Assembly (NCBI GenBank): GCA_973895155.1
Contig: OZ316898.1
Location: forward strand, 5,629,079 to 5,693,078
Length of the DNA stretch: 64,000 bases
Direction: 5' to 3'
Source of the DNA: Marsupella aquatica
Taxonomy: Eukaryota > Plantae > Marchantiophyta
Shown: positions 5,997-58,550 of the stretch, in pieces
Position numbering within the stretch: position 1 is the stretch's first letter
Layout of the letters: each line of letters opens with the position of its first letter
Translations under genes and position numbers: made by a program
The notes under the pieces: generated by a model
Database searches by the model: none
Seen by the model: the letters and a program-made list of their open reading frames with translations, nothing else
What the model was told of the DNA's origin: nothing

Positions 5997-6325
5997 ATAG
6001 TGGCAGCACTGATTAAAGAAAGAACCAAAAAAAAACCCTAAAAAGGATATTTGTAGTGCCATCTGTGATTAAAACAGAACCACACAAAAAGAAAATTTAC
6101 AGTGGCAGCTGGGATTGAAAAAAAAAACCCACTCAGAAAACACAGAAAATATTATTTTGTAGTGGCAGTTTACAGTGGCAGCTGGGATTGAAAAAAAAAA
6201 CTTTAGAGTGGCAGTTTTGATCTAAATTACACACAAAAAAGGAAATTTGTAGTGTCAGCTGTGATAATAAAATCACACAAAAAACACACCAAAAACACAC
6301 CAAAAACACACCCAAAAAAAAACCC
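5997..6325. repeat. Degenerate tandem array (tagtggcagctgggattgaaaaaaa-type units) upstream of the small TM gene
   Basis: About 7 recurrences of (t)agtg(g/c/t)ca(g) followed by ct(g/t)gatt and A-rich tracts, spaced roughly 40-55 bp apart; ends in aaaacacacc repeats. Confidence 0.75.
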
Positions 6326-6871
6326 TCCTTGTGCACCAGATAGGGCCAACTATTCCATTTGTCGAGCCTTCTTTTTTTTGCCTCACTGAGTTTAGTACAG
6401 CAAAGAACTTACGAAGCAGGGCCTTCCAGTCCAAGCTTGGTCCTCCAGTGCTCGTCCATTGTTAGTTTCTTCACTCGGAGTTGCCTGAGTGAGTCGAGTC
6501 TTAGTCTGCAGATGATTTGGAGAAGCTGCCATTCTCCCTACTGGAGAGTCCTCGGATCATCATCAGTACAGTAGACAGCCCACATTGCTTTCTTCCACCC
6601 ATTAGAAGCGCTTCTCCTCTTCTCAGTGTCTCTAATTCGGTTTTGGGATTGCAATCGTTTTGGTTTGTTGGTTAGACAGAGGAGAGAGGAGAGGACGATC
6701 ATATTCGAGAGAATCGAATTTCAGCTTGCAGGCACATTCGCTTAAAGCGAGGGAGGGCAAGGAGGAGAGAAGAGTTGCGAGAAAAACAAATCGCGTTAGG
6801 GTAGTCTGGTCAGCGAGGAAGGGAGCTGGACCACGATCAGTGCTGTTGAGGAGCTAAGGAAGGAGGCAAAA

Positions 6872-8120
6872 ATGTTGAGGGTGCGAGCGTCGGCTTTCTT
6901 GGCTGGGTTCGCGGTAGCTTCGGCCGTTGCGATGTATCAACTGCAGAAGGAGGTGTGGGCGAGTCATCGAACGCTCTCTTCGCAGGTCGGCTATGCTCTT
7001 TCTGTCTATGCAACTGGGTTTTTCGCTTGCTCCCCTCTCTCTTTCCCACCGGAGATCATTTCTTTGCAAGCCAATCCTTCTCAGAATTGTCCTCGTCCGG
7101 GGATGAGTGTCGGCTTGCCTGAATTGGGTTTAGGGTTCGTGGACTGAAAGAAAGCAACGAGCTGGTTGCCGATCAGTTTGTCCCAGGAGTGCAGCTTAAT
7201 GACTGTCCAATGTAGCGGCCTCAGTTCATTCCAGAGGCTCCTTGGTCATCTCTACCAGGACTTTAGCAGAACCTTCACGCACTCTATTAGGTGCAGGTAT
7301 TTCGAGTCATAAATGGTCGCTGTCATCATAGATTTGAGAATTCTCGACCTGTAGATGGAGAGCATTAGACCTGGAGGTTGAAAATTCTAGACCTAGAGGC
7401 AGGGAAATGGAGATAGATCTACGGAACGGTGTACAGCATTCTCGAATTGTTCTAGGCACTGATTCTCATGTGCCAAATTAATTTCATATACCAGTATTCA
7501 AGTTAGATCGTAGTTTCCTCAAGTGTTATCGTTCCACATTAAGCTCTAGTTTGGGGACTTTGTGCTGTTCCTGGTTTGGTCTGGGATAGTATACAATTAC
7601 GGACATGACCTAGATCTTCATTGATTTTAGTGCTGATATTAGCTACAATTTGTTTTAGGGTGTCAAAGTTGCTACTCTTTAAGGCCGCAGGTCTTCTGCC
7701 CTACTAACTCTTGCCCTTCGTAGTTGATCGCATTTCAGAGGGAGCTAGTGTCATCAGGAGGTCGAACTGTTGATTTAATGAGAATTATTATAGAAATCGT
7801 TCACTTGTAGTGTCTGGGAATTGAAATGGTATATAGTTATAGGAAAATATCATTCTAAGAAAATGCATGCTATGTAGTTACCCTCGAGAACATTATTCGT
7901 AGCAGCAGCCGCGGATAATTTCATTCATATGATGGTTTTGAAAGTCATTTTCTGTACGAGACATTTGGTGCTTGGCGCCACAATCACATTTTTCTGACAT
8001 CGTTGTTCCCATTGGGATTTGTTTTGGCAGGCGAAGAGTTACCACTCTGATTTGGAGTTGCGTATCAGTAAGCTTGAAAAGTCATCAGGTGTACACCTGC
8101 AGTCCAACGAATCAGACTAG
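6872..8120 (+). CDS. Conserved small plant single-TM protein, 67 aa, uncharacterised (possibly mitochondrial)
   Basis: Exon 1 6872-6985 MLRVRASAFLAGFAVASAVAMYQLQKEVWASHRTLSSQ (cag|gt). Exon 2 8031-8120 AKSYHSDLELRISKLEKSSGVHLQSNESD* after ttttggcag. Resembles plant proteins of the form MLRVRLASFFAG...LD.RIS.LE (recall). Confidence 0.8.
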
Positions 8121-10789
8121 GTAATATTCTTCAATGCTTACTAGTTGACTCAGTTTCTCGACGACTATTGATTTCCGGAGACCCTAAATAATCACCATGC
8201 CGTCAATAATCATGCATTCAGAAGATCTCTCATGGAGATGCAGCAGACTGTGGAATACAATCGGCGCCCGTTTCCACTCTGGGTAGTGAATTGTGACAAG
8301 ATCGAAAGTAACCCAAGGTACATTTGCCAAGAAGGATTACCTCTGGCACGTTTTAGATACAACCTCGCCAAACTCTATTCAATGGAGAGGGGTGCCCTAC
8401 GCGCTTGCAACGCACTCCCAGTCTTCCCTCCCAGTCCGTCAGACTGGTCTGTGGTCCAATGGTCCAAGACCTTCAAACCTCCACCTTTCGTGGTGCTAGA
8501 TCTCACAGAATACACGTGCTTGCATGTCCTTCACTTTGGCTTGCGTCATTCTGGGAGAGCGTTCTCATCCCAGAAAAAAAGGTTCCTTGCGGAGCGCACG
8601 CTTGGTACTCATCACACCCAAGATGCTGAGGCATGAATGTGAATTGGTACTTCTTGAGTCCTCTTTACTTCCTATTTGCCTCCATAGTGACACAGCAGTT
8701 GGGTACTGCTTTCTAACTGCCAATGGTCCCCTGTTGAATGATCCTCTGCAAGACTTGACACGATTATTTCTTGTACTTGAGTCCTGCAAGCCTGCCATCG
8801 CTCCTCAGATACTACTTCAGCTATAATGAACTGCTCCCACAGCCTCCATACAAAGAAATTATTGCATAACCCCTAGCTGAGGAGTTTGATGATTGAAAGT
8901 GGAATGATTTGCTTAGCGCTTTCTTGGTTTAAACAACAAAATGCCTTGCCTGATTGGCGTTCCTGCTTTACGTGAGCTTGTATCTGAAAATGCAGATTCT
9001 TATGCTGGGTGAAATTCATTTCCTAGACTTTAATTGACATGTAAAGATTGGTAAGTACGTTGTGTGAACATGGTTAGAGCGAATTTTGACACCTGTACTC
9101 GTTGCTTTTAGGATATTTACTGCAGAGCTGCTGCGCGGTGACTTCCAAAGCTGGATGCTACTTAATTCCAAGGAAATGTAAGCTAGGATTTTTGAGGACA
9201 AGATGACTACAGCTGTACGTCCCATCGAGTTGACATTTGTCGGCATTCTTTCGTGAATTGTTCATGGCATCAGTGTTGGGGCTTGTCAGCATCTTGCCCT
9301 CAGTATTGAATGGGATTCGCAATTCAATCTCATAATTTCATGTTCTTCCTACCTTCATGATGTTGAAAAGTGAAACACCTCATGAATAGTAGTGATGTTG
9401 GGCGAACATTGTCTTTTTCCTGTTGCACACGCAGTGTAAGTTCGTTCAGAGGTGGACGATGACAACTTGTAGACACTTCACTACTTCAGTGGAGTTCAGC
9501 TTTGTACGTAAGACCCGTCAATTTCCGGGAGAAGTGCTTACGTAAGGACAGAAAAAGCTTTCTTCTGGAACCGCTCGACTTCCCCCACACAAAGAACATG
9601 TTGCAACTACTGTCCATTTAAACACTCTTCTGCAGAACTGTACGCCTTGAGTTGAGATTGGCTGACGGCTGGTGAGATCATTAGGGAGTTTTGGGTTGTC
9701 TAGACATTCGACTCTTAGTTCCAGCCCTTCGACTGAAGAGCAACTTCCCCTGGGGGCTGATAGGTCACCTGTCGTTGGCGCCTCATATCTGTTGATTTGG
9801 CAGAACCTTATAACTTGCAACAAAGTTTAAATATCCATTGTGACTCACATCGTCCTGCATACTAAAGTACGGGGTACACACAACAGCTCTCCCCAGCTCG
9901 AGTGGCGACCATGGGAGTTTCCAAATCAATTGTTCAGAACGAGTGGGTTCACCGTACCAATGACGAAATGATTGTAAAGTGATGAATTGCGACTGAGCAA
10001 TTGCAATCCTCATGTACTCGTCTGTACAAGTTTCATGACGGGATCGCAACTTGTGGTAGCTTAAAAGATTTGAATATTCTTGTGCTCCAAAAGTCTCGTT
10101 AGGTTTGGCATGGATGGCAGCAACTGTTCAACAAGAGAAGGGATTGGGGGAGTGCGGGGTTAATGTTCCCTTGGGCCTCTCGGATGGGTCACAAGTTGCT
10201 ACGAAATTACTCTCAAAATGACGGGACAGTAGCCTGAGTGCCTGAGCTTGGATGTTCATACATGGTACGACTGGTTCCAGTTCCACCCCTAACTAAAGCT
10301 GTGTCCCCAGAGTCAGGGTCTAGAGATTTCAGTTAGTTCCACCCTCAACTGTAGCTGTGTCCCCAGAGGCAGGGTCTGGAGGTTTCACTTGGTTTGGAGG
10401 ACCTTACCCTAGTTTCAGATTGCCCTTCATTAGATAGATATTAAGTATCACTGCCCACATCTTAGACTAACAGATAGGCATGACAGACTTCGTTTTTCAA
10501 AGTTAGCCGACTCAAACTCCCTCTGCAGATTCCTCTTATTGGAGAAAGTACTGGAGAAAATTGAGTTGTAATGTGGAAGTGTACATCATCCCATCTCATC
10601 CCCTCAATGGCCATGAGAGAAATTCTCCAAAATGTGAGTTGCCATGTGGTAGTAACTAGTAAGTTGTCAGCTGGCTGTATTTGTTGTTGAACAGTCCCAT
10701 TACAAGGGATTGATAGGAAGTCGAGGCTTTGAAGGAACATCTGTCTCTCTGTGGCTTCCAACACTGGCAACCACTCTTGCTGGAGAACT

Positions 10790-11530
10790 CCGGCTTGAAA
10801 CTTTGAAACCACCTATATTACTTGCAATCTCGACTTCCATCTTTTGCAGCCCCATGTGTTGGCGCTGTCACTCTTTGGCTTCCAACGTTGACACCCCCAC
10901 TTACCAGCAATCGTTGGCTACCTTCATTGGAGGCCCCAATTATGGACAATCTCTACTTCCAACATTGACAACCCTTATTTCTAATGATCTCTGGCGTCCG
11001 ACTTTGACATCCCTTCTTTTTTGTGTCCAACTCCCAACTTTGACACCCCCTGTCACAGGCAGTCTTTGACTTCCAATTTTGGCACCCCCTACTAGTGGTA
11101 ATCTTGGCTTCCAATTTTACACCACCTACTACCAGTGATTTCTAGCTTCTAACTTTGACAACCCTGTTACAGGATCTCTGCCTTCCAACCATGGCACCTC
11201 CAATTACAGGCGATCTCTGACTTCCAACTTCGGATGACACCCCTAACTAGTTGCAATCTTAGCTTCCAACTTTGACACCCCCTGTTGCAGATTATCTCTG
11301 CCTTCCAACTTCGAAACCCCCTATTACAGGTTATCCCCGACCTCCAATTTTGACAAAACCCCTACTACTGGCAATCTTGCCCACCCCTTGTTACAGACTA
11401 TCTCTGCCTTCCAACTGGAAATCTTGGCTTCCAACTTGGGCACCCCTAGTACCTGTGATTTTCTAGCTTCTAATTTTGACACCCCCTGTTACAGACAACC
11501 TCCGCCGTAAAACTTTGAATCCCCTTATTG
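10790..11530. repeat. ~38-bp minisatellite array, roughly 18 degenerate units
   Basis: Recurring cttccaactttgacacccc(c)t(g/a)ttacagg..atctct(g/t) units. Confidence 0.9.
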
Positions 11531-11974
11531 CCTGAGTTGGCCTTCCTTCCACCTTTACTTATATGGTAGCGGTTGTCCAGGCTGTAATCTTATGACCAGA
11601 AAGTGAATGAAAGTTGGCCCCTAGCAAGAAGCTTTTTTTAGCATTCTGGGTGCAAGCTTTAGGCTACAACCCCTGCCCAGACCTCCTTTACATTACTTAA
11701 TGACAGTCTGGGAAAAGTTTAGTGATCATGAGTTTCTGAGCAAGAAATTATGGAAATAGCAAGTACTTTCAAGTTTACTCATCATGAGTTTTTGGGCAAG
11801 CACCTCCAAGTTTACTGATCATGCTTTTCCGAGCAAGAAATCATGGAAATAACAAGTACTCCATAAATCTTACTTACAAAATGCAAAGAGAAGCTAAAGA
11901 TGGGGTCTAGACTTCTAGAGTGAAGTCTCTAGATGGTAACTCTAGGTAAAGATAAACTAATAAAAACAAAATGG

Positions 11975-12191
11975 AGTGAAGACCAAAACCACGGGTGGGA
12001 GCAAAAGACGAAGAACATAGATTCCCTTGTAATACTTTCTTTATGTTATTTCTATTATCATTCAAAGAATGGGCATTCAAGGCTCCTAATCAAAATGAAG
12101 TGAATACCAAAACCACAGATGGGAGCAAAGATGAAGAACATAGATTCTTTTGTAAGATTTTATTATTATTAATATTCAAAGAATGAGCATT
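11975..12191. repeat. Diverged ~120-bp tandem duplication
   Basis: accaaaaccac..atgggagcaaa(a)gac/tgaagaacatagattc...attcaaagaatg(g/a)gcatt occurs twice. Confidence 0.85.
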
Positions 12192-12619
12192 AGGTTCCAA
12201 ATGATTGCTAGTAATGATTATGAGCAGGGAACATGTATTACTTACACAAATTAAACCCCCTATTAGGGCCTGTCAAAGTTCTCCTATAACACTTTGGTTG
12301 GTTACCGCTTTTTTTCTGATGTACCACCCTTAGGGGGTACATATTTTGGTCACCCATAACAATTCTATCTTGGTCATAAGTACATTTTATGTTCTAAGTG
12401 GTAACTCAGGTACAAGTGTGCTTTGACACACCGTATTACCATTAAACCCCCTATTACCTGAGTTGGCCATTATAAGTGTTTTCACCATGGTCCTTGGTTT
12501 TCCTTTCCGTTCCCCGGTCGTCTGCCTACGTGGTTCGTTCCCGGCGTCCATCGCTCCCTTCGGCTTCGGTTCCTTGCCAGGGTTCTGGGTTTGCCTCCTG
12601 CCTTGCATCCCTCATCCAC

Positions 12620-12647
12620 AACTCAACTCAACTCAACTCAACTCAAT
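12620..12647 (+). repeat. (AACTC)n pentanucleotide microsatellite near the 5' end of the HMA-like gene
   Basis: aactcaactcaactcaactcaactcaa seen directly. Confidence 0.9.
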
Positions 12648-12802
12648 TCTGCGCAGCAGAGTTGCAGTTGCGCAGCTGCCCATCTCATCATTCCCTCCCC
12701 TTTCCCACTTTTCCTCTTCCGCTTCTCAAAAACTGCACTGCATTTGGGCCTCGATCGACTTTTTCAGAGCGCAGAGCAGAGAGATCACACCCAGATCCAT
12801 CT

Positions 12803-15191: not shown

Positions 15192-16045
15192 ATTTTTTGC
15201 TAGCTGATAAACTGAGCTGGGGATTTAGACAGTGCTGGTCTTTTCGGTCGGAGAGGATTTGGTGATCTGAGGAAGGTGAAGGTTCGATTGTTAGAACACT
15301 TTCACATCTAGATGCATTTAGCTTTGGAACGTTTCTCCAAAGTAGCAGGTCTGGAGATTTTGATTCACTTGAAATGGTAAAGGTTCACCTTCTAAATACT
15401 GAGCTGTCTAGTGTTTAGAATAATGTGTTTCCCTATAATGCTCCGAAGGAGTCCTTAAAATGATATCAAACAGCAAATTTGCTAAGCCTATCTCTGTGTC
15501 TCATTTCATTGGTAGTGTAATCAATCTTGGGGGTGACTATCCTTTGCTTTGAATAAAAGGTCTGACTGAGTGAGCATTCTTAACAAACTCTCTGAATTGG
15601 TGTCCTTGGAAATTTCTTCCGGTTTATTAAAAGTCATCTTCTGAAACACACGGCTGCCCGACGTCCGGATATTCTTATTTCAACTTTAAAGGATCATTTT
15701 CATTGTAACGGAGCGTTGAATGTGCTCTCCCTAAACGAGAGGTCTTTGTGAAATTCCTTGCATACCCACGAGGGCTGTCGTTTGAAGCCCCAGTTGTTTC
15801 TGTAAGTGTTAAGTTGTGGGGGCGGGGCCAGTTCAGAGAAGGGGATCAACAACACAACTAAAACTTGAGTACTGTATTGCATATTGGACACTACACAGGT
15901 CTAGTTTGTGACCGGGGAAATCCTATCAGTCAAAAGTTGTTGCAATTGTTGTTGCACGCGAGCAGAACACAATCCCAATACTGACCTCAGTGGCATTCCT
16001 GACAGCCCCAAAGTCGCATTCCTGACAGCCCCAAAGTATGTATAT

Positions 16046-16916
16046 TTGTTGCATATTGGATATCCAAATGAAAATGTTTTTCCCTGTGGGGCCCATCAAG
16101 TCTTTTGTTGCATATCTGCGTTGGAATATCCAAGCTAAAAATGTTTTTTTCCTGGCCGGGGCCACAAGTCTTTTGTTGCATATAAAATTGTAACTTACAA
16201 ATGAAAAAGGGCCATCAAGTCTTTTGTTGCATATCTGCATTGGGACATCCAACTGCAAATTATTTTTGCCGGGGCCACAAGACTTTTTTGTTGCATGTCT
16301 GCATTGTAACATCCAAGTGAACACTGTTTTTCTTCCTGACCGGGGGCATGAGTCTTTTGTTGCATATATACTGTGTAACATACAAATGAAAAAGGGCCAT
16401 CAATTCTTTTGTTGCATATGTGCATTGGAACATCCAAGTGCAAAATGGTTTTTTCCTGGCTGGGGCCACGTGTCGTTTGTTGCATATCTGCAATGTAACA
16501 TACAAGTGAAAAAGGACCATCAAGTCTTTTGTTGCATATCTGCATTGGAACATCCAACTGAAAAATAAAAAATTGCACAAGTCTTTCTTTGCATATCTGC
16601 AATGTACAAGATACAAATGAAAAAGGGCAATTGAGTCTGTGGCTGCATATCTGCATTGTAACATACAAATGAAAAAGGGCCATCAAGTCTTTTGTTGCAT
16701 ATCTGCATTGTAACTCCAAGTGATAAATGTTTTCCCGCTGACCCAGCAGCAAGGGGGGTGGGGGAGTCCTTTGTTGCATTTCTGCATTGTAACATACAAA
16801 TGAAAAAGGGCCATCAAGTCTTTTGCTGCATATCTGCATTGTAACATACAAATGAAAAAGGGCCATCAAGTCTTGTGTGGCACATCTGCATTTGTAACAT
16901 ACAAATGAAAAATCCA
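16046..16916. repeat. Higher-order minisatellite: ~17 copies of a ~32-bp core with two classes of linker
   Basis: Core aagtcttttgttgcatatctgcattg(t/g)aacat, followed by either acaaatgaaaaagggccatc (52-bp unit) or ccaagtg...ttttcctggccggggccac (about 60-75-bp unit). Confidence 0.95.
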
Positions 16917-17672
16917 AGGCAGCTCCAAGGAGGGCATGCTGGCAGTAGCTACAGTACAGTCCAGAAGCAACTGAATGGACATGTGGCACGCTCCAGACCC
17001 TCTCCCCTTTTCATGCTGAAGGTGTCATTGATGGCCCCGAGGGGACATGCAGAATTCAACGAGAATGTGACAAAACTCGATCCACCGCCTTGGAGAAGTC
17101 GTTGCTCTGCCCAAAGCACCTTCTAGCCTTACGATCTTTCTCCGTCCCTTGGGTGGACCCACACCAACGACCACTGAATGGACGGCCCCTAGAGAAAGAA
17201 TCAGTAAATCAATTAAGAAGAAGCCCCTTCAATTGCTCGCTGCCTCCTCAGTCCCGAAGAATAGACATAGGCTGCTTCTCAATTGAATGGGTGGTCTGTT
17301 GTTGTTCGTCATGCTCCACCGTACTGGACACGAGAATTTATGCGAGAACAAGAGAGGATGAGAGGATGATGCAGTCGAGAGCAGCTCGTTTACTGTTGTG
17401 GGCGAGAGAGTGATGATTGGGTGGATAGAATGAGCAGGGAGCTATACACTGTTCGAGAATCGTTGGAAGTCCCGTTAGTCGCGGACCATATTCCCAGCAG
17501 CAGCTGCAGCAGGGGAAGCTTTGTTGTCCCTTGTGAAGCGAATGCTACGGGTTTTTCCCTCTGCTGGGTCTCAAAACAGATTCTTCTTCTTCTGAGTGAG
17601 TGAGTACCTAAGGAGGCTGGTTCGTGGGTGCAGAGTTTTTAGTTCTCTTTTGACCCAGAGAATCACGGTATT

Positions 17673-22826: not shown

Positions 22827-22898
22827 TCATCTCACTTGCTCAACAAGTACTACTCACAATGTTCATCTCACTTGCTCAACAAGTACTACTCACAATGT
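22827..22898. repeat. Perfect 36-bp tandem duplication
   Basis: tcatctcacttgctcaacaagtactactcacaatgt x2. Confidence 0.95.
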
Positions 22899-25135: not shown

Positions 25136-25211
25136 CGACGACGGACGGACGGACGGACGGACGGACGAACGGACGGACGGACGAACGGACGGACGGACGA
25201 ACGGACGGACG
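25136..25211. repeat. (GACG/ACGG)n tetranucleotide microsatellite
   Basis: acggacggacggacgg...gaacggacggac, about 18 units with occasional GAAC variants. Confidence 0.95.
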
Positions 25212-34100: not shown

Positions 34101-34315
34101 AAGTTAGTACACCTTCGTATAGAAATGCTCTCGTATAGAAGTGCTCTCGACATCCTTTCATCCATCCATCCATTCAATATGCAGAGTTATTATATTACAC
34201 GTCTAGTGCATACGATACCAGACAGGCGAGGAAGGCTGCAGGTCTAATGGATGCATGGATGGCACAAAGTTAAGCAGCAGCCTGGAGGACATTTTCATCA
34301 TCAATTGGACTCAGA

Positions 34316-44300: not shown

Positions 44301-44949
44301 TCGACCTGGCCTCCCTTCTCACAACCGATGTATCCACGATCAGGTCCTCAAACTTCCGGCCTTCACCTCCAGTGGTGGAGTAGGCATTCCCCTCACAACG
44401 AATCAGTCAGTACCCTCATATCCAGGCTCTCATCATGCAATGCAAGATTGGTCCTATAATCCGGACCCAAGATCCTCTACCAAAAGGGTAGAGCCTCCTC
44501 ACTCTACTGCTTAAACAGCCTAATGCACTCGGGAGCTCAAAACCTACTAAGTTCGGCTTTGAGAGGTGTGAGAGGCTGGATCGACTCTCCTTCCTTATAT
44601 CCGGATTCTGCTGTGGTTGCGCCTGTGTTTGACTTATGGTTTTAAAAACTTTGGCAATGCACAACTGTTATTGAGTAGAGTCTCGGTATAAGCTTTATAT
44701 CTCATTCAAGGCTTATAGTAAAAAGTTCCGGGTCGATCCTCCTTCTCTAATATCAATCCGGGTAGACCTCAGCTGGGCTTGAAAGTTTCATAACACTTCA
44801 AAGTAGTCTTCAGGTCCCTCTTCAGCCTCATTTGAGATCTTGAACTTAAAAATTCTAAAATTTATGGTTATTTAACCCTTCTCTCATAAACATCCTTATC
44901 TCACATGTTTTCAAGTCACACTTAACATTTTTTTCAACCAGAGTCAACA
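41301..44949 (-). mobile_element. ~3.65-kb TG..CA-bounded LTR-like element containing an accessory ORF
   Basis: The minus strand starts TGTTGACTCTGG (44949) and ends ...ttatcaccttgctacaaaACA (41301). No gag/pol motifs recognised and no matching TSD, so the boundaries are tentative. Confidence 0.5.
42295..44033 (-). pseudogene. Broken retrotransposon-associated accessory ORF (~580 codons; one frameshift near 43550, one in-frame stop at 42928)
   Basis: Three ORF-track pieces join into one protein: ...LLKMGCESLMELPWSY...RGRPERWT...SKCLDPDL / FSFLLPLLYPEKPRRVTVGVGSTIVAAYKGERKVNWAKLIFDLIRKLV...PLSCYLVHLY... / a coiled-coil and Pro-rich tail. The pattern resembles multicopy TE-linked hypothetical proteins of liverworts (recall). 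Confidence 0.75.
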
Positions 44950-47383: not shown

Positions 47384-48007
47384 TTTTTCATTGTTCTTTG
47401 TTTTTCCCTTGATTTATAAAATTTGGTGGAAGTTCCCTTTTTTAAGGGTTGTTCTTGCTTTTAGTTTTCCTTGCTTGGTGTTTGTAGTCTTTGGATTTCC
47501 TTTCATTGTTCTTTGTTTATCCCCTGATTTATAAATTGTGGTGGAAGTTGACTTCTATACGGATCTGGTATCCAACTTTTTCATTGTTCTTTGTATTTCC
47601 CCTGATTCGTGCATTTTGGTGGAAGTTCCCTTTTTTTAGGGTTGTACTTGCTTTTAGTTGTCCTTGCTTGTACTCTTGGGATCTCTTTTTATTTCCTTTC
47701 ATTGTTCTTTGTTTTTACCCTGATTTATAAATTGTGGTGGAAGTAGACTTCTATACGAATCTGGTTTCCAAGTTTTCCATTGTTCTTGGTTTTTACCCTG
47801 ATTTATAAATTGTGGTGGAAGTAGACTTCTATACGAATCTGGTTTCCAATTTTTCCATTGTTCTTTGGTTTTCCCCTGATTTATAAATTGTGGTGGAAGT
47901 TGACTTCAAGAAGAATCTGGTTTCCAAGTTTTTCATTGTTCTTTGTTTTTCCCCTGATTTATACATTTTGGTGGAAGTTGACTTCTATACGGATCTGGCC
48001 TCCAAGT
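47384..48007. repeat. Tandem array of 7 units (78-bp and ~115-bp variants) upstream of the CofD-family gene
   Basis: Core tttcattgttctttgtttttcccctgatttataaattgtggtggaagtt, continued either by gacttctatacg(g/a)atctggtttccaa or by ccctttttagggttgt.cttgcttttagtt. Order of variants A-B-A-B-B-B-B. Confidence 0.95.
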
Positions 48008-48344
48008 TCGACACTTTTTGTTCTGGGACCTGAAATCCTCTCGTGTACAATCATTGATACTTTCGAGATTGTACGAGAGGTTAAATCAAAGCAATAGGAA
48101 TCCCGGCAACGAGGGAAAGACCGAACGAACAATCGTGTAGAGGCAATTAGAAAGGTCCCAGAGTTCAACCGCTGAAATCATGAAGAATATGATTGCTAAG
48201 CTACTGAATTGTTCTGCAAGAGCAAGCCAACGACGAACGATCGTTCGTCTCTGTAGCAAAAATGATGAAGCAATGGTTTGAGAATCCCGGTAATCAATTG
48301 AGGAGCGACCACTGATGTAAGGTCCTGGAACAGCGTTAGGTAAC

Positions 48345-51300
48345 ATGCTGGAACTGCTTGCTGCTGGGCCTCCTGGCGTAGTAGCTGGAGCTCGTGCACC
48401 TGCGAGCTCGTCTTGCACATCACAACGATCTCCTTCTTTCTCTCCTGCTGTTGTTTTCTCTTCTCGTACCTTGAATTCGACGTGGGCGATCAATCAGTCC
48501 TGGCGATGCTGCTGGCTCGGCAAGGCCTCTGTTTCTGCGATGCAGCATGATGAAGGTGTTGTTGCAACGCGAGTGAGTTCCTGTTCTACGAATGCCAACG
48601 GCAGTGCTGCTCCGCTGCCAGCTGTGGAGGGGATGGGAGGAGATTTGGGCGTTCGTTCTCAACCCGTCCCTCCTTCTCTGTTGGTCTTCTCAGGTGTGTG
48701 TTGAGTTTCGACGTGAATCCAGGTGCAAATTCTGATTGTGAAATTGATCTATGGGGGCTTCATTGTTGAGGGATTTTTTAAAGAATTTGCTCGATTACTT
48801 GTCTGGTAGCAGAAACGGACGGACTCAAGTCTCGTTTTTTCTCAACTGGTGTAATTAGATCAAATGCGTGGCCTTAAAAAAGGTTTTTTGGAAATGTGTG
48901 CATTCTATCGTGTAGGAGGAACTGCATTTAACGGAGTGGTCGAAGAGCTGAAGAAGTTCACCACTCGAGTGGCGCACGTTCTTCCAGTTTCGGACGATGG
49001 TGGGAGCACATCTGAAATTGTTCGGGTGCTAGGTTTGTCTCTACAATCCCTCCTTTTTTCGGATTATTTGATGTATTAATTTTTTTCCTCTAAAGGCAAT
49101 TTTATTATGCAGAAAACCCAATCACGACAGCCCACATATGTGCCCATTGCGCTTTTGCTGCGTGGGCAAGATTGAAAACCACATCTTAAATGTCTCGTCT
49201 TGGGTCTGTCCTACCATTGTCAACAGAGTAGTGTAGAGGATTTTTGTTTTGTTCATTCATGATGGACTTTGCGGATGGATTGATACACCCAGGAGGGCCT
49301 GCTGTGGGAGATATTCGATCCAGATGTTTGCGACTCTCCGATGAGAGCACTTCAGAAGCCCTCGCTGTGAAAAGCCTCCTCGGGCATCGGCTATCATTGA
49401 ACGAATCCGAAGCAAAGGCAGAGTGGTGTGTACATTCTGCTACTGGCCTATGATGAGTACAGCAGTAAGCTTTCATGTCGCACATCAATTCAGGATTCCT
49501 GTTTGCACGAGTTCTACATCCACCTTGCTATATTGATAGAATCCTTTACTGCAATTGTAGGTTTTACAGATTCTTTCGATGTCAATCCCTAAAGATGATT
49601 CTCGTCCTCCTCTCTGCATGCTTTAGGTATGAAATTGTTGAGGGCGAGCATGGACTTTGGCAAGGAGTATCTGGGCCCTACAGGGAAACAATTCGTGCCT
49701 TCCTTGTACATTTTCAAAATCAGGTTGGATGTCCTCCGTAATACTGGTGAACTGGTGATACCTTGTACTGATTACAGCACTGCAGGTATAGCCTTTTAAA
49801 CAACAGGAAGCCAGTCTCATTTGCCACATTCATTACTGTCGCCCTCGTCTTCTCCTTCTTCCTCTTATGGTCAGGATTTCTCCTCCTGTTTGCTGCGCAG
49901 ATTCTAAGACATTCCAATGCAAGGTTTCAATTTCGCAATGGAAGGTACATTTGGTCGGACTCCCAGCTCAGGTCTCGTGCAGTTTGGATGAAATACCCTA
50001 GTTTTTTTGGTATGGAGATCATTTGAAGGGAAAATTCGCGTCAAAAATATAAGGACTCGCCGCGTTCGCCAGGACTTACCTTCCTCATGATTTTCTACCT
50101 GTGTACAGTATTGGAAATTTTTTCTTTGCGGGAGCTCGTATTTTCTTGCAGTCATTGGAGGCGGCTATATTTCTTTACTCTCGCGTATGCCAATGCCCTA
50201 CTGATAGCCTTGTACTTCCGGTTATATGCACAAATGACCGTCTCACACTGGGTGCAGAGCTACGGGTACATTTCTCTGACCTATACATGACTGGAACAAT
50301 TCAATAGATTACCGTGCACCAGGATACATGCATACTGAAAATAGCCAGAGTACCCAACAAGTGAATTCGCTAGCAAGTTTGGAGGGTTCTGCAAACTCTG
50401 ACAACAGATGATGCCGTTCAGCATCCCCAAGCTGTTAACACTCCGTCTGCTGATCTTGTTTAACAACAGTAAAAATCTCTTTTCCAGGATGGGACAATCA
50501 TAAGGGGACAAAATGAGATTTCACATCCAATAGCGAGAGTCAACCACCAAAGTTCAGACCTTCAGGCAGTGAACAAGGTCAGTTCCGTTGAATTTACCGT
50601 TGAATTTACCGTGAATTTGCAATGCCGTGCGTCTGAATTTTTGGATAAGATTCTTTGCGATGCTGTGATGTAATGTCATTTCTTGGCGCTCTATTTCACA
50701 ACGTCACCAATCGGTGAAAAATGTAAATTACTTTTGCAGATGCAACATGCATCAACAGCACTTCCATCACCTGTCAAGCGTATCTTCTATATGTCATGCG
50801 AGCGCTCAGACCTTCTGCATGAGGTTTATTCTCTCTACCCATTAATTTGGTAAAGGGTTGTATGTGGCAATACTGATATTGCCACCGACACCAATATGAA
50901 TTTAGTGTGTGTATTCTTGACTTAAGCAGAATTTGTGAATATGTAACCATGGTCTCTGGACCTTGCATGTAGATTAGACCTCTTAGGGTTGTTTACGATC
51001 GAGGCATCTCGTTTACGTATCCACTATCTTTGGGCAAGTGTGGCTAATGTGTCTTTCGCCCCTTGTTGCACACTGGCCTCAGTGGCACCTTTCATCTTTT
51101 GTTACCTCTTTCTGTTTGTCATACTAACTCCAGGCATTTCGTTCAGGTATTTCCAATCGTAAACTCAGCTGTGCTAGAACAACTTCACCAGGTTGACACG
51201 ATTGTCTATGGCATGGGATCTTTATACACATCTATTTGCCCCTCACTGGTACATACTTGTCGTGACTCACTTCCCTCATGTTGTCCTTAGCAGTTCCGAC

Positions 51301-52309
51301 TAGTCTAAAATCTGCAAGCATCTGTTCACTGAGAAGCTCGTTTGCGGGTTGTGAAGTAGGTGCTCCGTGGGGTGGGAGAAAGTATCGCTAAGCGGAAATG
51401 TCCTAAGGTATGTACCGGAGTAGACGACAGACAAACCAGAGCCATTAATGAAGAGTAATACATTGACGTAACTGCCAATGAAAGCAGACCGAAAAATCAT
51501 TCGAATTATTTTTCTGCATAAGCAAGGCACGCCATGTACACTCACATTGATATGATGTATGAAGGACTATTCTTCTCAGCTGTATATGCTAAGCATTTCT
51601 TGAAGCGATTCTGTCACCACCATGTCTTCTTTGACGCAAAGTCCTGGATGGGATCTACATTCAAAAACAATTATCGCTTTTATTCACTTTGTGCAGGTCT
51701 TGATTGTCAACGGCTCACATGATAGGGAATCTTCAGGGATGTCTGTCTCAGACTTTGTGTTATCAGTATGCGATGCTCTCAATCGCACGTTTTGTAATGA
51801 TTCTAACAACAGTCTTAAAAACCTGGTAAGGCCCTTCCCAATACTTCTCTTCAGGCCAACAGACGCTGTCAGTAAGATGACGTATATTCTGAATTCGAAG
51901 CTAGCGCTTCAATAGTTATTTGCTCTCTTCGGGCAGTGGCAGATGGCCAAACATACTGAGTATCTTTTTCTGTCGGCCTGTCAACGTTTGCGTTCAGCCT
52001 TGTGATTACATTAATGTGGTGCTGGTGCCGAAAGGAGGTGACATACCTGTAGATCGCCAAAAGCTTGATGCATTACACATCAAGACTGTGGTACGTACTC
52101 AATAACTCACAGGATTGCAACTGGGACTAATATGACGAAGTAGTTATTTTACTGGCATGATCTCAAAGTAGATATTAGTAACATTTCTTATGCACTGATT
52201 TGGTTATCTGCAGATTGACGTGGATTCCGTTGTAGACGCCGATGGGGGGACAACATTCCACCCTAAATCTCTTATCGAAGCCCTCCATGACATTGTACAA
52301 TCGTGTTAA
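48345..52309 (+). CDS. CofD/UPF0052 (YvcK-like) family protein, homolog of Arabidopsis MEE18 and yeast YNL011C
   Basis: Thirteen exons: 48345-48693, 48916-49032, 49293-49425, 49627-49723, 49901-49944, 50109-50265, 50488-50577, 50740-50823, 51147-51248, 51360-51407, 51697-51825, 51998-52090, 52214-52309. Motifs LVFSGGTAFN, LPVSDDGGSTSEIVRVLGGPAVGDIRSR, SIGNFFFAGAR, DGTIIRGQNEISHP, YGMGSLYTSICPSL, NGSHDRE. Confidence 0.93.
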
Positions 52310-53002
52310 GAAGGAATGATTCACGACCCAATATAGTACATGAAACGAGATCACTGGTTGCCATGACTACTCTCTGTACTTGTGGTGTCTTGAAGTTAGA
52401 AAATCAGGTTCGAGAATACTAATGTAAATTGGGGACTATTATTTTGTAGATCTCTCTTCATGAGGAAATGAGCTGAGCCGGCGAGCTTATGATAAGTGCT
52501 AGGTTGCGGGCTCCCATGCCATACTTGTCTCCACGAAGAAAATTTTCGGGTAGAATTTATTCCAATCCTAGCACGATTGCAAAGTGTCTGACCGCAGCGC
52601 TACGCTCCAAATTCGGAATTTGCTGTGATTTCCGAATCTCAATTGTTTTTTGGAATATTGGGGTGCTAAGAGTTTAAGTTCCTAGTAGCTTCCGAAGGAT
52701 GAAACCCAACCCACAAGCATAGTGTCACACATATCGCTGAACGACATCTCACGAACGACATTCTTGTACCCTTGCTCGCGAACGACATCTCGTATCCTTG
52801 CTTGAGAGTCCCAAATTAAAAGAAACGAATTATTTGATCACCCACAAAAATGCATTCCTGTTAACTCTTGTTTCCCGAGTGTGCATGTTCTTGTGCTAAG
52901 CATTGTAAGACACTCACTGAGAGCCGACACATTTGCATATCTGTGGGGTAATTTACAGTAATTTACAATCAAACTTACAAGCACAATTTCTGGGCACCTG
53001 GA

Positions 53003-56000
53003 CTATTTTGCATCGCTAGACTGATGCCGCAACATGGAGAGCCTCTGTTGGAGATCCAAATTTGAAAGACGCTCAGCCTCCAGAGCAATCTCCAGCTTTG
53101 ATCACATCGTGCAACACAATCTCCAACTCAGCCACATTTCGTGGTATAAATTCTTGAGCATGAATCTAGTGCTTGTCCCGTAATTATCACAGAACTTGAG
53201 TTGTCTTAAAAATATACAAATGATAGAAAAACAAATGTGATCACCACCAAACTTAACCGACAATTCTGTATGGGCTTACTCTGATACATCGAAAAAGAAA
53301 CCTAGTTCACTCAAACCCAGTAGATTTGGATGTCATTTTACCTTGGCTGTCCGTGAGCTCCATTCATCCAACATTGCCCGCACACGCTCATTTTCTTCAA
53401 TATACTGTTTCACGAGTCAAGATGTAAGTACTTATCATTTTCTATGCACGAAAACTTCCAATAATTAAGATTCCAGAATCCAGATCAGAGGCATTAGGGA
53501 CCCCTGGTGAGGATTGAATAAGGACATGGGAATACCAGAATTTGACGGTTGTGTAAAATTCTGGGAACGACTACAAGAAAGAAATCCTTGCCAGGTGCAT
53601 GCCAAAATCCAAGCATCAAGCAATGCATATAAAGAGAAAAAATTGTTTTAAACTGAACCTGATGATTGATGGCCTGAACGTGCTTGAACTCCGCGTCACG
53701 TTCTCCAATGACACTTCTTGATAGACGTAAATCAGCTAGTAGCTGATCACGCTGCATTGACAACGTGTTTCTTTCAATTGCACTTCATTCTCCAGTTAGG
53801 TCAATTTCAGTTAAAAGAAATCATTAGTTCCTTCCGCTGCTAGGGAATATCTAGGGCTTATCATCAATTAAAGACACGCATTCTTCGAGGGTGAATTCTT
53901 TCAAACATTATGCTGGGAAGAGAAATATCTTTGTAGTAATATTTAAGGTTTCTTGGTCTGATTCAACTGCACTCACTTCTGTGTAGACATGCTACCAAAT
54001 CGGAAAGCTCTCATTTCAAGTACAGAAACCTCGACGCATCTGAATCTGACCGAATTACCTCTGCGGTCACGGCTCGAAGTTCTTGCTCACGAGCAGACAA
54101 GAGATGCACAACATCCACCTGAAACCCAAGATTACAGATTTAGCTCGAGCCTGAAAGAAGTACATGACATTCAAAAATTTATAACCAACTATTTCATCTC
54201 CTCCCCCTCAAGAAGTTTCTTGGCCAAGACGAAGCCCTCCGCCAGGACGGTTAATTAGTTTACAAAATTGTAGAAGAAATGCAGACATAGGCGAAAGGAT
54301 ATAGAACAGATCCAGAGAATGTAGCTAAGTTTTATCCATAACGGCAAATATAGATTGTAAAACATTCAAAAAAAGGACAAGGACTACTCGCAGAACGTCA
54401 CCTGTGGAGTGTTGGGATTTCCATCGTGGGAGCGATCGAATTTACTAAGGGTTTCTTGAAGCCTCACAATCTGCACATATTTATTCAGTGCTCTGTGTTA
54501 ATAAAGTGCTATCCTCTTCTACTCAGGACCGCTGATCTACAAATAGTCAGCAAACGCAGAACCCAACAGGTAGTCGTGTACCTCAACACTTGGGATCGCC
54601 ATATTTATATAGCTTTCAATTCAGGACGCCGTAACTGATGTTGCACAATTTCAGGTCAAACTAGTGCTAAGAAATGGATCTATTGGATAGTTACTATCAT
54701 TGATTTTCTCTTGAAATGGTGACGTCAAATAGCTGGGAAGCATACTATATAACAGAAAGCGCAGAGGATATCCGTCAATTGAATGCTGTAGTACATTTAG
54801 ATGTTGTGCAATATAACAATTTACTGGATATCGATAACAGTCCAAGGGGGTTTCCAAGTGCCAACTATCAACAAATCGATGTCATATGTTTTTTCAAACA
54901 TGTTTCATTCCTCATTCGATCAGTACCTCCTCACTCAGATAACGTAGGTTATCCTGTTGATAATGTAGGAGCATTGATTGCTGCTCTGCTAGGCCTCCAT
55001 CATTGTACCTATTCAGAGAATTATCGTTTGTAAACATTGCACACGGAAACCATTTTCACAGATAAGACGATAATCTGACCTACATGAAGGTATTTCCACA
55101 TCCCAGATACACTGAATGATAACATCTCCGTTGCACATGACGACCCTTCTGGGAAGGCTAAAAGGTACTTACCTCACACTGGCCAGTGAGTCAGGAGGGT
55201 TTAAAGCAGAATACAGTGAGTCCATCACGTCAGGATGTCTTTCCACAGCATGATGTCGGTACACCTTTTCTGAAGAAAGACACCACAGTAAGTATGCAGT
55301 AGTTTTGCGCACAAGTCCAGCATCCTGCAACTGACTGTTGTCATTGTTCGAAATTGGAGATCTCAGTTCTACACTGCATTACTCAGAAACCTCAATGAAA
55401 AATGTAGAAGGGCGCAAACGGCATTACGAAGGTAAGCTCCAGTCAAGTATATTGTCAACCCTATTTCCAACAGCATAAGAGCCCTGCATTTGTTGCCATG
55501 AGACAAATTAGCAATAGTCCAAGATAGAACCTAGCATTTGGGCAGTCGATAACAACGTACCAGGATATGATTTAAGAGTACAAGACAAGCTTCTCAGAGG
55601 ATCAATAGCTATGGCATCATTTGAAAAAATAAGTAATGTCTCTGTGCCTTAACCATGTCCGCAAGGTCTACCCCAAATCAGCTGTTTTAGAGATAATATT
55701 AAAGGGGCGATATATCCGAATTCACCTTATCAGCAACAAAGGAGGTACATTGTCTTCCCACTCTTTTGGTTGCCAGACAACCACCAAGAGCACCCCTGTT
55801 GTCCCTGCAAGAAGAAAGCAAACCAGAACATCAGGAGGGAAATAGCCTTCAATAGTACATGTACATACAGGCTGAAAATAACTTAAAATGAGAAATAGTG
55901 AAGGAGTAAAACAACTGTTTGAGCAACTGATAGCCAAATAGACTTAAAATTCCAAAGCAGATCCTAATGTCAAGGCTTCCCTTACCAATCGAGAAAATAA

Positions 56001-57637
56001 AGAAAGGAAGATGGATGATCCAATCCAGGTCCTTGCAGAATTTTATGTAACCCTGTGACCAGGAAGACATTTTTTGCTGAGCCGAGCACTATCTCAACCT
56101 AATTTATTTTTATCTTCAGAAATATGCAAACCTCATCTCTGACTTTCAGCCGCCTAAACCATTCAGAACCTAACTATTTGCCGCCACTGGAGCAAAATCA
56201 AAGGAAGCTGATTCGTGAGAATCGCATGTTTTATCAACTTAAAACAGATTCCACAAGCCAAGCACGAGACCCAAGGGACGAAACATACCTGTCGCTGTTC
56301 TTTCTGTTGCTCAGCCACTAAGTGTCTCTGCAGTATACCTGCGCTCCAGAGCAAGTAAGCCTGAGTTGTTGTGAAAGTGTCTTTTGAACCCTTGCTGAAT
56401 TAACAACTTGGGACGTTTCAACATGTAATTTCATCGACGGTACAATCCTTCTCCAGCATACATATGACTACTTCGGAACCATGAAATGCCCAAGACCAAT
56501 CACTGCAAATGAGATATTCACCTACGAGCATGGTCTGCGTACCATGTAATTTCGAAAGAGCTGATTTGTTTTTTCTTTTCGAATAGGAGGAAAGAACTGT
56601 CACCTGTGATTGCCAGAAGAACTGCGTTACAGCTGCATGTAATTGACTTCACAAGATAACTGTGCGGTTGAGGCACCAATATAGCAGACGCTATGATAGA
56701 AGCGGCACAGATTGCCTGCAATACCATCGCAGGAAAGAAGCTCTTCTTAGAAATACCACATCCCACAGAATGTAACACAAACCATCAGGAAACCGAGATT
56801 GAAATCATGTAATTTTATAGAGGTCAGTTCATACCAGTAGAAGTAAGTATATAACAGCTCCAAGTATATTCGCCTTCTGTTTTACTTTGTATACCGGGAG
56901 TTCAGGAACTATATCCATAAACCTGCAATCCATCCATACAACCGGTATTCGGAGCATGAAAAGGAAACCCTAGCACCCTCACCGACCACTTCTTCTACTG
57001 CTATGAGGGCCCACCTCCAAATCCTGATGAAGTAGGTTTAAATTTCCATTAAGGGAAATAAGAGCCTGATGCGTGCATAGAGCTTCATTTACAATGACTG
57101 ATAACACGAATCCAAAAAAAGCCTCTTTCAATAATTTGTCCTAGTACCTCCTCTACCTCATTTTTAAAGAGAAACTTACAAGTCTTCATCAACTAACAAC
57201 AAATCCAAAACAAGTTAATCCAATCCTATCCAATTCAACTCTATCCAACTAAATCGAACCATATCAAATCAAATGCAACACAATTTTAAGATGTGGCTCC
57301 CAAGACTTTCACAACACTGAATGCTAGAGGAGCTCCGACGTTCAGTCCAACTATGTTTCACAGTTTGATTGATCCAAAAAGCATTATGATCGGGCAGACA
57401 AGGAGAGAGAGCAAAATCGAGGGGGGTGTGGCTGGGCAGAAGCTGTCCTCTTACTTACTGGTCATGACTGGGAACATCACTTGGAGCGCGCCGAGGGCCG
57501 GGCCCTGCCCCCGGCTGCTGCTGCCATCTGCCCAAAAGATTGGCCCGCTCCTCGTCCACGTTGCTGCTCTGCTGCCTCTTCAGGGACGGGTTCTTGCTAT
57601 CCCACAATAGAGGAACACTCTCCTCCCCGAATTCCAT
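53003..57637 (-). CDS. FIP1: TMEM192-family membrane/coiled-coil protein, homolog of Arabidopsis FRIGIDA-interacting protein 1
   Basis: At least 13 GT-AG exons, e.g. 57459-57637, 56835-56922, 56604-56715, 56289-56338, 55986-56052, 55726-55804 and last exon 53003-53095. Peptides FMDIVPELP, SCNAVLLAITGILQ, GYIKFCKDL..IIHLPF, PDVMDSLYSAL, LLHYQQDNLRYLSEE, EQELRAVTAE, YIEENERVRAMLDEWS, LEIALEAERLSN match the plant FIP1 pattern. The first exon is the least certain. Confidence 0.88.
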
Positions 57638-58084
57638 GAAGCTACGGCTACAAAATCATCGACGTTCCTTTCTCCCAATGCCAGTCTTCTTCTTCAGCAC
57701 ACCACCTTTCTACAGTAGACAAAAGAACCCACGAGCCTGAACGCCATCATTTCTGGTTTCCCTCCTTCCCAACGCTGATGAGGTGAGCTCTCCTTTCTCT
57801 CAGTGACAGGGGGGAATCGATTCAAGTTCGAAATCTCTGCTTAGACCGAATGGGGCTGTGCTTCTGCATCCATGTGGGCGAGCTTCTCCTTCCCCTACTC
57901 CCAATATACGGTTCCTTGTGCATCTTATTAGTTTAGATTTTCACCCAAGAAAGCCCAATGATGCCGGTTTGTTGCACGGTTAGCGAGGGCGAGGTGCAGA
58001 AGGCAAGGCTGAGGCACGGATGGCGAGACAGAGGGTACCACAGCAAACAAACAAACAGACAGTCCTGCTGCAAACAAACAGATA

Positions 58085-58550
58085 ATACTCAGCAAAAACA
58101 CATTTTTCCAGCAAACAGTTTCTTCCTGCCCACATGGACGTCTTACTACACTGTCCACTCCAATTAGTGTTGAACAATTAGTATGATACCAATATTAGAG
58201 TGAAAATATTAGAGTGACTCAGGCTAATTTCTTCCTGCCCACATGACATCTTACTACACTGTCCAGAGCAATTAGTGTGAGTGAACAATTAGTATGACAC
58301 CAATCAAACAGATAGTGTACTCTGTCAGCAAAAACACATTTTTCCAGTAAACAGTTTCTTCCTGCCCACATGGACGTCTTGGTACACTGTCCACCCCAAT
58401 TAGTGTGAGTGAACAATTAGTATGACACCAATATTACAGTGACTCATGCTAATTTATTCCTGCCCACATGACATCTTACTACACTCACATATTACTACAC
58501 TATCCAGAGCAATTAATGCGAGTGAACAATTAGTATGACACCAATATTAG
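58085..58550. repeat. Four-unit tandem array (~100-125 bp) upstream of the FIP1-like gene
   Basis: ttcctgcccacatg(g)ac(g/a)tcttactacactgtcca...aattagtgtgagtgaacaattagtatgacaccaat at about 58120, 58230, 58357 and 58457. Confidence 0.92.

Follow-up and report, generated by a model that had tools for sequence, protein, structure and literature searches.

In the window, by which we mean the whole 64-kb stretch of leafy-liverwort DNA analysed here, tandem-repeat arrays lie 5' of five of the seven genes, arguably of six, and each array is decayed and unrelated to the others. The 5'-of-promoter pattern is real within this window. The arrays are depleted in CpG, contain nested duplications of several ages, and mostly abut the switch from CpG-poor to CpG-rich DNA. 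We tentatively explain them as locus-specific minisatellites that originated locally on the outer margin of the promoter and were then methylated because they are repeated, a reading whose chance we place close to even but below it.

The arrays and their genes

The original prediction had placed six arrays in the window. All six were present, with positions that were exact or off by a few tens of bp; five of them (A2 to A6) are strong and one (A1) is weak. The strong arrays comprise 4-20 units of 38-125 bp each and span 0.5-1.5 kb in total. A2 to A6 are minisatellites by the usual definition of head-to-tail units of ~10-200 bp in at least four copies. TRF returned 40 rows covering 3710 bp of the window, compared to an average of 0.3 rows for block-shuffled copies (n = 20).

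The weak array A1 (5994-6325, plus strand) consists of 6-7 degenerate units of 33-73 bp around the 20-nt motif TTTRNAGTGNCAGNTNNGAT, of which six irregularly spaced copies occur within 270 bp; six hits were found against 0.02 expected for the whole window. A1 ends in the 11-bp microsatellite (AAAAACACACC)4.5, and its edge lies 547 bp from the ATG of gene 1 (6872). A2 (10748-11531, plus strand) has ~19 units of 38-39 bp, its long self-alignments show 66-71% identity, and it lies 1274 bp from the ATG of gene 2 (12803). The entire spacer between genes 2 and 3 is occupied by A3 (16045-16913, plus strand), with 15 units of ~52 bp, a higher-order periodicity of 120 and 185 bp, and a distance of 760 bp to the ATG of gene 3 (17673). 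A4 (plus strand) extends from 23569 or 23638 to 25145, contains ~13-21 units of ~87 bp, and is located 1169 bp from the ATG of a TAXIMIN-like gene, whose first exon begins at 26380. A CpG-rich microsatellite, (GACG)18, lies at the junction of A4 and the promoter CpG island (25140-25211, plus strand). A5 (47381-48022, plus strand) is composed of seven 78-bp units, two of which carry a 40-bp insert that creates a 196-bp dimer. Identity among the four proximal units is 88-99%, and a TATA-like TTTATAAAT is present in every unit. Its edge is 337 bp from the ATG of a CofD-like gene. On the minus strand, A6 (58055-58555) consists of 4-5 units of 113-124 bp, including a duplicated 236-bp dimer of ~95% identity, 434 bp from the ATG of a TMEM192-like gene.

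The window is syntenic with Calypogeia fissa. The CofD-family gene (48345-52353, plus strand) is the ortholog of C. fissa L001 1292-5570, and the coding alignment of the two opens exactly at 48345. The last exon of the TMEM192-like gene (53002-57637, minus strand), at ~53002-53050, aligns to C. fissa L001 1-49, and its first-exon ORF begins at 57637. The 3' ends of genes 1-4 were approximated from the CpG profile. The sole gene of the seven that has no array is an F-box/beta-propeller gene (34319-35641, minus strand), a single long ORF with its 5' CpG switch at ~37340.

Smaller arrays away from promoters were observed at 3300-3964, 10279-10394, 22827-22899, 62409-62504 and 63721-63935. The one at 3300-3964 is a weak degenerate zone without assigned strand (55 bp x 3.9, 29 bp x 2.3 and 32 bp x 2), which begins at the CpG switch bounding an eighth CpG-rich unit (1-3300) on the right.

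Self-BLAST detected no similarity of the arrays to one another or to the remainder of the 64-kb window, in agreement with the expectation that the six share no obvious sequence and do not represent one TE family. The array units had zero copies in 192 kb of C. fissa, so that "private" here covers 64 kb of the own genome and 192 kb of another species. The arrays contained neither coding remnants nor matches to Rfam or tRNA; the tested CpG-poor ORFs had no Pfam matches. RNA folding of the array units revealed nothing unusual, and there was no consistent base skew across the arrays.

Placement and the CpG switch

All six arrays lie 5' of the start codon. Random intergenic placement reproduced a layout with all arrays within 1.27 kb 5' of an ATG with P ~0.0008-0.0025 (~0.001, post hoc). 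Arrays were present in 6 of 24 5' flanks and in 0 of 22 3' flanks (P = 0.02), and neither of the 3'-3' spacers contained one. The convergent spacer at 52309-53003, where no comparable array had been seen, holds just one repeat (26 bp x 2.1). Because a single window, chosen for looking striking, makes up the sample, all statistics are post hoc. At 337-1274 bp from the ATG, the arrays are direct repeats in the region within ~1 kb upstream that characterizes the promoter repeats targeted by RdDM, and their edges are 0-971 bp away from the CpG-rich promoter block.

The observed-to-expected CpG ratio was 0.0-0.42 in the arrays (0.0 in A1 and 0.36 in A2) compared to about 0.7-1.7 in genes and promoters. 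The change-points between CpG-poor and CpG-rich DNA were located at 6410, 12500, 16980, 25030, 47990 and 58030 for A1 to A6, at distances of 85, 971, 67, 0, 0 and 41 bp, respectively, from the gene-proximal array edge. Thus, five of the six arrays end within ~100 bp of the switch, which none of 200,000 random placements matched, in a test that is partly circular for A3 and A5 because the arrays are the most CpG-poor local DNA and help to set the change-point. The anticipated proximity of the arrays to the CpG switch was borne out in these five cases, and A2 was off by 971 bp. Smaller tandem duplications at 11715-12202 (plus strand; 37 bp x 2.2 and ~124 bp x 2) occupy part of the gap between A2 and the promoter of gene 2. 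With five arrays abutting the switch and none at a 3' flank, the placement is non-random in the window, as a position-dependent process would have it.

CpG depletion, our sole proxy for methylation, suggests that the arrays are methylated. By this proxy, five of six array edges coincide with the gene-proximal edge of silenced DNA, with the same partial circularity for A3 and A5. The final two units of A4 lie inside the CpG island and contain six and four CpGs, compared to 0-2 in every other unit. Since units of one family are found on both sides of the switch, position and not sequence decides their CpG state.

Growth and origin of the arrays

Each array contains nested duplications in several registers and of differing ages (65-99% identity). 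This anatomy fits satellite growth in place and would not result from a single insertion; it is also what the proposed repeated local duplication would leave behind. The promoter-near units tend to be more alike in A2 to A5, with Spearman coefficients of 0.14-0.61 that reach significance only in A3 (0.61, p 0.02). In A3, TRF matches were 91% at the promoter-proximal end and 75-85% farther out, and TRF indicated more similar proximal units in both A3 and A5. Comparison with C. fissa adds to the picture. The CofD promoter, the single orthologous promoter compared, has no array in C. fissa, although the promoter block adjoining A5, which starts at 48115, is conserved. This indicates that arrays are born and lost lineage-specifically. 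An equivalent layout was found at 1 of 17 genes in 192 kb of C. fissa, and this single case (L007 3966-4433) is an independent occurrence.

According to the explanation that we favour, each minisatellite would originate locally, on the outer margin of a promoter, and would gain units in episodes of tandem duplication caused by slippage, unequal sister-chromatid exchange or break repair. Units beyond the protected zone of the promoter would become methylated, since repeated DNA attracts cytosine methylation in plants, and would then lose CpGs through deamination, like the neighbouring transposon-derived DNA. The promoter, and not the repeat sequence, would fix the end of the methylated block. 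Methylation is recruited by tandem repeats upstream of genes (PMC3613580, citing Henderson and Jacobsen 2008). The upstream bias could have two causes. Promoter edges may be prone to breaks, and the genome may tolerate small-unit expansion just outside the promoter but not a large insertion or a change within the gene. Plant promoters are hotspots of meiotic breaks (PMC5880243). In Arabidopsis, however, such breaks are elevated at terminators too (PMC5880243), which would predict arrays at 3' ends as well. None were seen, and this counts against the explanation, as do the occurrence of the layout at just one of the 17 C. fissa genes and the weakness of the identity gradient in three of the four arrays.

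It is rather unlikely, in our estimate, that the arrays are instead the internal or subterminal repeats of ancient and degraded non-autonomous transposons (CACTA, Mutator-like, hAT, Helitron) from different families with a preference for promoters, in which case the upstream position would result from target-site preference and not from duplication in place. DNA transposons do reside preferentially in plant promoters (PMC5023962; PMC3613580), and all arrays share the CpG depletion of transposons. In addition, A5 directly adjoins a transposon-like block of long inverted and direct repeats (44957-47383), and the A1 motif includes TTTGTAGTG, resembling a CACTA 3' terminus. Yet no significant terminal inverted repeats flank any of the six, and none of the units recurs elsewhere in the window or in the 192 kb of C. 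fissa. The CACTA-like 9-mer has no inverted partner in the window and occurs only within A1, with all copies on the same strand. For a solo LTR with a repeated U3, the expected TG...CA ends with a 4-6-bp target-site duplication would turn up by chance ~1.5 times per array at this degree of decay, too often to be telling. Translated array ORFs had no relatives in 1.8 billion representative proteins or in a 5.8-billion set, which is weak evidence against a transposon origin. It would also be unparsimonious for six families each to leave only an array, each stopping at a promoter edge. Arrays whose oldest units are ~65-70% alike also contain duplications of 95-99% identity, which shows continued growth in place.

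A local or sampling effect appears quite improbable to us. The region may be rich in tandem duplications, most of its spacers are short and head-to-tail, which would make any array in them appear upstream, and the window was flagged for looking regular. TRF coverage is 58 bp/kb here, compared to a mean of 31 bp/kb (range 5-67) at nine C. fissa loci; three of the six arrays take up most of a spacer of 1-3 kb, and the smaller arrays of the window are not promoter-proximal. With thousands of windows scanned, a per-gene rate of just 6-10%, the C. fissa value, would allow one window of this kind per genome. In the two long CpG-poor regions (10.7 kb; at least 6 kb), however, the strong arrays are nevertheless found directly at the promoter edge, and a 3.5-kb 3'-3' spacer is free of arrays. 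Slightly less probable still is maintenance by selection, with the arrays acting as methylated buffers against the spread of heterochromatin (cf. maize mCHH islands) or as epigenetic or enhancer switches of the FWA/SDC/b1 type. Such a role would agree with the confinement of the arrays to the 5' side, with five of six lying exactly at the presumed methylated/unmethylated border, and with an age sufficient for units to diverge to 65-75% identity; PMC3613580, with references cited there, and PMC11142347 offer precedents of upstream tandem repeats that control genes via RNA-directed methylation. But decay of the units is unconstrained, they preserve no core other than what shared ancestry accounts for, and the F-box gene of the window and 16 of the 17 C. 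fissa genes do without an array. Moreover, the arrays have no motif in common, the A4 units straddle the switch, which argues against a border defined by sequence, and no array is conserved at the orthologous CofD promoter. These last three observations speak against a sequence-specific boundary or insulator element and weaken the earlier suggestion that the arrays act as boundary elements.

A broader form of the minisatellite explanation is also conceivable, although we regard it as unlikely. In this leafy-liverwort lineage, a promoter-anchored, polar duplication process would routinely build private minisatellites genome-wide, with new units added on the promoter side and older ones methylated and decaying outward. 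If so, at many genes an individual repeat buffer would separate the promoter from transposon heterochromatin, a genome-wide architecture not yet described for plants. Should the pattern extend to the whole genome, promoter edges would be preferred birthplaces of minisatellites in a compact, haploid-dominant plant genome, and the methylated/unmethylated border would routinely consist of private repeats and not of transposon ends. This would provide a simple, sequence-level system for the setting of methylation borders and the origin of upstream repeats, and would permit a direct test of repeats as gene buffers versus epigenetic switches. If the pattern fails elsewhere, the window is a local curiosity of ordinary minisatellites.

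Relation to known systems

The arrays resemble the repeats at FWA and SDC of Arabidopsis and the b1 hepta-repeat of maize in that they are direct repeats upstream of a gene, apparently private to that gene, probably methylated, and located beside an active promoter. Those are single loci, however, with demonstrated siRNAs and effects on expression, whereas here five or six neighbouring genes have arrays and the units are old and decayed.

Human-type minisatellites (VNTRs) reportedly adjoin recombination hotspots and mutate with polarity, as described by Jeffreys and colleagues. The arrays share with them units of tens of bp, an apparent locus specificity, probable growth in place, and some indication that duplication was more recent at one end (here the promoter-proximal one). 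They differ in that the polarity is weak (significant in one array) and the arrays are degenerate instead of highly homogeneous. Internal or subterminal arrays of DNA transposons (CACTA, Mutator-like) likewise have units of tens of bp in methylated DNA near genes, if the arrays here are indeed methylated, but the sequence examined contained no terminal inverted repeats, partner end, transposase remnant or second copy.

Like the mCHH islands of maize and other grasses (PMC3613580, PMC8374106), the arrays take up the terminal few hundred bp of presumably silenced DNA that face the promoter, chiefly 5' of the gene. The grass islands are a methylation-defined feature, usually found at the edges of transposons, in contrast to apparently private minisatellites read from the DNA sequence. 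They have been reported to be non-conserved, which fits the arrays described here.

Land plants, and eukaryotes more broadly, have an excess of short tandem repeats in 5'-UTRs and within 200 nt upstream (PMC3887541; PMC11686069). Repeats are likewise denser just upstream in the window, where two array-promoter junctions carry microsatellites of this class, (GACG)18 and the 11-bp repeat. The main arrays are of another kind: their 38-125-bp units, in arrays of 0.3-1.5 kb, lie distal to the CpG-rich promoter, while promoter and UTR repeats are largely mono- to hexanucleotide.

Structure and sequence of the six arrays

The window carries six tandem-repeat arrays (A1–A6), each located 5′ of one gene start. 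All six arrays listed in the original prediction are real; A2–A6 are strong and A1 is weaker. TRF returned essentially no arrays on shuffled sequence. A1 (5994–6325), upstream of gene 1 (ATG 6872), contains one 20-nt motif in six copies, against 0.02 expected. A2 (10748–11531; gene 2, ATG 12803) comprises ~19 units of 38–39 bp each, and A3 (16045–16913; gene 3, ATG 17673) is composed of 15 units of ~52 bp with higher-order periods of 120 and 185 bp. The array upstream of a TAXIMIN-like gene (ATG 26380), A4 (23569–25145), has ~13–21 units of ~87 bp and is followed by (GACG)18. A5 (47381–48022) precedes a CofD family gene (ATG 48345) with 7 units of 78 bp each, and A6 (58055–58555) precedes a TMEM192-like gene on the minus strand (ATG 57637) with 4–5 units of 113–124 bp.

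As had been proposed, the arrays lack a common sequence. We observed no similarity between them, nor between any of them and the remaining window, and within the available sequence each array is private. Ten ORFs of the window had no exact counterpart in the protein collection, and the core motifs of A3 and A2 had no match in metagenome scans. The translated A4 ORF gave no match in a word-indexed protein search, and the translated A3 ORF gave none among 1.84 billion representatives, both being weak negatives with respect to the copy number of the units. Relative to the gene, no consistent strand-linked composition bias was observed. An RNA-gene or hairpin reading was rejected, as no Rfam or tRNA match lies inside the arrays and the fold z-scores range from −1.9 to +0.7.

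Inside each array, several registers and several ages of duplication are superimposed. Long self-alignments show 66–78% identity, the four proximal units of A5 are 88–99% identical, and a 236-bp dimer of A6 has been duplicated with 95% identity. Nested duplications of several ages mark these arrays as having grown stepwise in place rather than having been inserted as a single block. In A2–A5, the similarity of neighboring units tends to rise toward the promoter (Spearman 0.14–0.61), significantly so in A3 only, and TRF agrees with this trend for A3 and A5. A nucleosome-sized higher-order period (152–236 bp) was too variable to claim. Smaller two-copy repeats occur throughout the window, including the 3′ ends. 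Every 78-bp unit of A5 contains the TATA-like sequence TTTATAAAT, which is replaced by TTTATACAT in the last unit. On this basis, A5 may represent an amplified segment resembling a core promoter.

Position of the arrays at promoters and CpG switches

The window is plant nuclear DNA in which CpG-depleted spacers alternate with CpG-rich gene blocks. The one gene without an array encodes an F-box/beta-propeller protein (34319–35641, minus strand). Genes 1–3 matched no family when their exons, unspliced, were searched individually against Pfam and in one protein search. The same two approaches named no family for the CpG-rich unit at 1–3300, which has no recognisable coding gene. Degenerate arrays at 3300–3964 begin precisely at the CpG switch at the right edge of this unit, and they would add a seventh example if the unit were a minus-strand gene. 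A tRNA-Tyr(GTA) gene (62944–63014, minus strand; Rfam 40.7 bits; ARAGORN) lies in CpG-poor DNA. Three successive CpG-depleted ORFs of 210, 209, and 256 aa (42298–44186, minus strand), which have no Pfam match, are probably a decayed transposon gene. Directly distal to A5, a GC-rich block (44957–47383; 0.52–0.57 GC) contains long decayed inverted repeats (arms 44972–45311 and 46045–46393, 72–79% complementary) as well as direct duplicates (45641–46035 and 46747–47240, 82–86% identical); the block may represent a hairpin locus or, alternatively, a transposon bearing long terminal repeats.

The array edges are 337–1274 bp away from the start codons, in agreement with the predicted distance of 0.3–1.3 kb, and all six arrays are CpG-depleted (observed/expected ratios of 0.0–0.42). 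A change-point analysis of CpG density placed the switch from CpG-poor intergenic to CpG-rich promoter DNA 85, 971, 67, 0, 0, and 41 bp from the edge that faces the gene in A1–A6, respectively, an estimate with some circularity in the case of A3 and A5 because the arrays are themselves the most CpG-poor local DNA. The claim that the arrays sit near this switch thus holds for five of them and fails for A2, whose gap of 971 bp is occupied along part of its length by smaller tandem duplications (11715–12202). The two promoter-nearest units of A4 lie inside the CpG island and have kept 6 and 4 CpGs, compared to 0–2 in the other units. As units of one family occur on both sides of the border, it is the distance from the promoter, rather than the repeat sequence, that sets the border. 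The (GACG)18 microsatellite (25140–25211), located straight after the last A4 unit and inside the CpG island of the TAXIMIN promoter, has a very high CpG content.

When the six arrays were placed at random, uniformly in intergenic space, 0.08% of the trials had every array no more than 1.27 kb 5′ of an ATG (0.25% for the five strong arrays only), and none of 200,000 trials put five of six at 100 bp or less from a 5′ switch; these values apply to a window picked for its regular look, in which the 3′ ends of genes 1–4 are approximate. The informative cases are two long CpG-poor regions (37.3–48.0 kb and 58.0–64.0 kb), where a strong array is nevertheless situated at the very promoter edge, and the two 3′–3′ spacers (3.5 and 0.7 kb). 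Neither spacer contains an array, which for the 0.7-kb spacer confirms the reported lack of a comparable array between convergent 3′ ends.

Comparison with Calypogeia fissa

The related leafy liverwort C. fissa served as control, with nine loci covering 192 kb, 17 gene starts, and 19 gene ends. Both data sets were analyzed for a self-similarity depth of at least 3 in the 1.5 kb flanking the coding sequence. In the window, five of seven gene starts reached this depth, compared to one of 17 for C. fissa (P = 0.003); no 3′ flank reached it in either data set. The single C. fissa array (locus L007, CBCUJL010000019.1, 3966–4433) has an 87-bp unit and the same anatomy as the window arrays; it ends where CpG-poor DNA gives way to CpG-rich DNA, ~180 bp ahead of the start (4616) of a gene annotated with 91 aa. 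Thus, the layout is not unique to the genome of the window, yet it is rare in the C. fissa sample. At another locus (L009), a bHLH_SAC51-family gene on the minus strand has its annotated start (17146) inside a 162-bp × 2.0 tandem repeat (16847–17178).

The window is syntenic with the C. fissa locus L001; the gene order shared by the two is TMEM192, CofD, F-box gene, and part of the TAXIMIN gene, with ~75% identity in aligned exons and introns. A C. fissa protein is 79% identical to the long F-box ORF. CofD provided the one orthologous promoter that was compared, and no array is present there in C. fissa; therefore, A5 was either gained or lost after the lineages split. A weakly conserved CofD promoter block (48115–48276 in the window and 5843–5997 in L001, 64% identity) is located just gene-ward of the A5 end, and A5 is outside the conserved promoter. 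Between the conserved promoter blocks, the divergent CofD/F-box spacer measures 2.2 kb in C. fissa versus 10.75 kb in the window (compared regions, L001 5843–8998 and window 36703–48276), the extra DNA consisting of CpG-poor DNA, the GC-rich duplicated block, and A5.

Possible origin of the arrays and relation to known repeats

The arrays could plausibly be remnants of DNA transposons that carried arrays, inserted preferentially at promoters, and have since decayed. DNA transposons do favor promoters (PMC5023962, PMC3613580), but the hallmarks of such elements were not found at the arrays: no terminal inverted repeats flank them, the CACTA-like 9-mer of A1 has no partner terminus, and Pfam revealed no coding remnants. 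We consider this origin somewhat unlikely. A regional or sampling effect appears distinctly improbable to us; in its favor, TRF coverage of the window is about twice that of the C. fissa loci, and a per-gene rate of 6–10% makes one such window per genome conceivable. Very unlikely, in our view, are modules kept by selection as buffers or epigenetic switches, of the mCHH-island or FWA/SDC/b1 type, whose expected position the arrays match; however, they have no motif in common, the A4 units straddle the border, and conservation is lacking.

We tentatively favor the possibility that the arrays are private minisatellites that arise at the outer edge of promoters and expand in episodes, through slippage, unequal exchange, or break repair. 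As repetitive DNA is a target of methylation in plants, they would then become methylated and subsequently lose CpGs, with the border being fixed by the protected zone of the promoter. The 5′ bias would result from two factors together, namely break-prone promoter edges and a tolerance for small expansions just outside the promoter. Arabidopsis promoters show elevated levels of SPO11-1 oligonucleotides, and breaks are elevated at terminators too (PMC5880243). The terminator breaks, as opposed to the missing 3′ arrays in the window, remain a difficulty for a break-based account.

Methylation-recruiting tandem repeats upstream of genes are known from individual loci. In land plants, and in eukaryotes more broadly, short tandem repeats are enriched in 5′-UTRs and within 200 nt upstream (PMC3887541, PMC11686069), and mCHH islands represent gene-proximal edges of heterochromatin (PMC3613580, PMC8374106). 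In the literature, we found no description of arrays like those in the window as a regular arrangement in bryophytes. In contrast to the known repeats and borders, the window arrays combine minisatellite-sized units with an own sequence for each gene, and they lie outside the promoter, at the presumed methylation border, and recur at neighboring genes. What differs from the known systems is the combination of these four features: unit size, per-gene sequence, border position, and recurrence.
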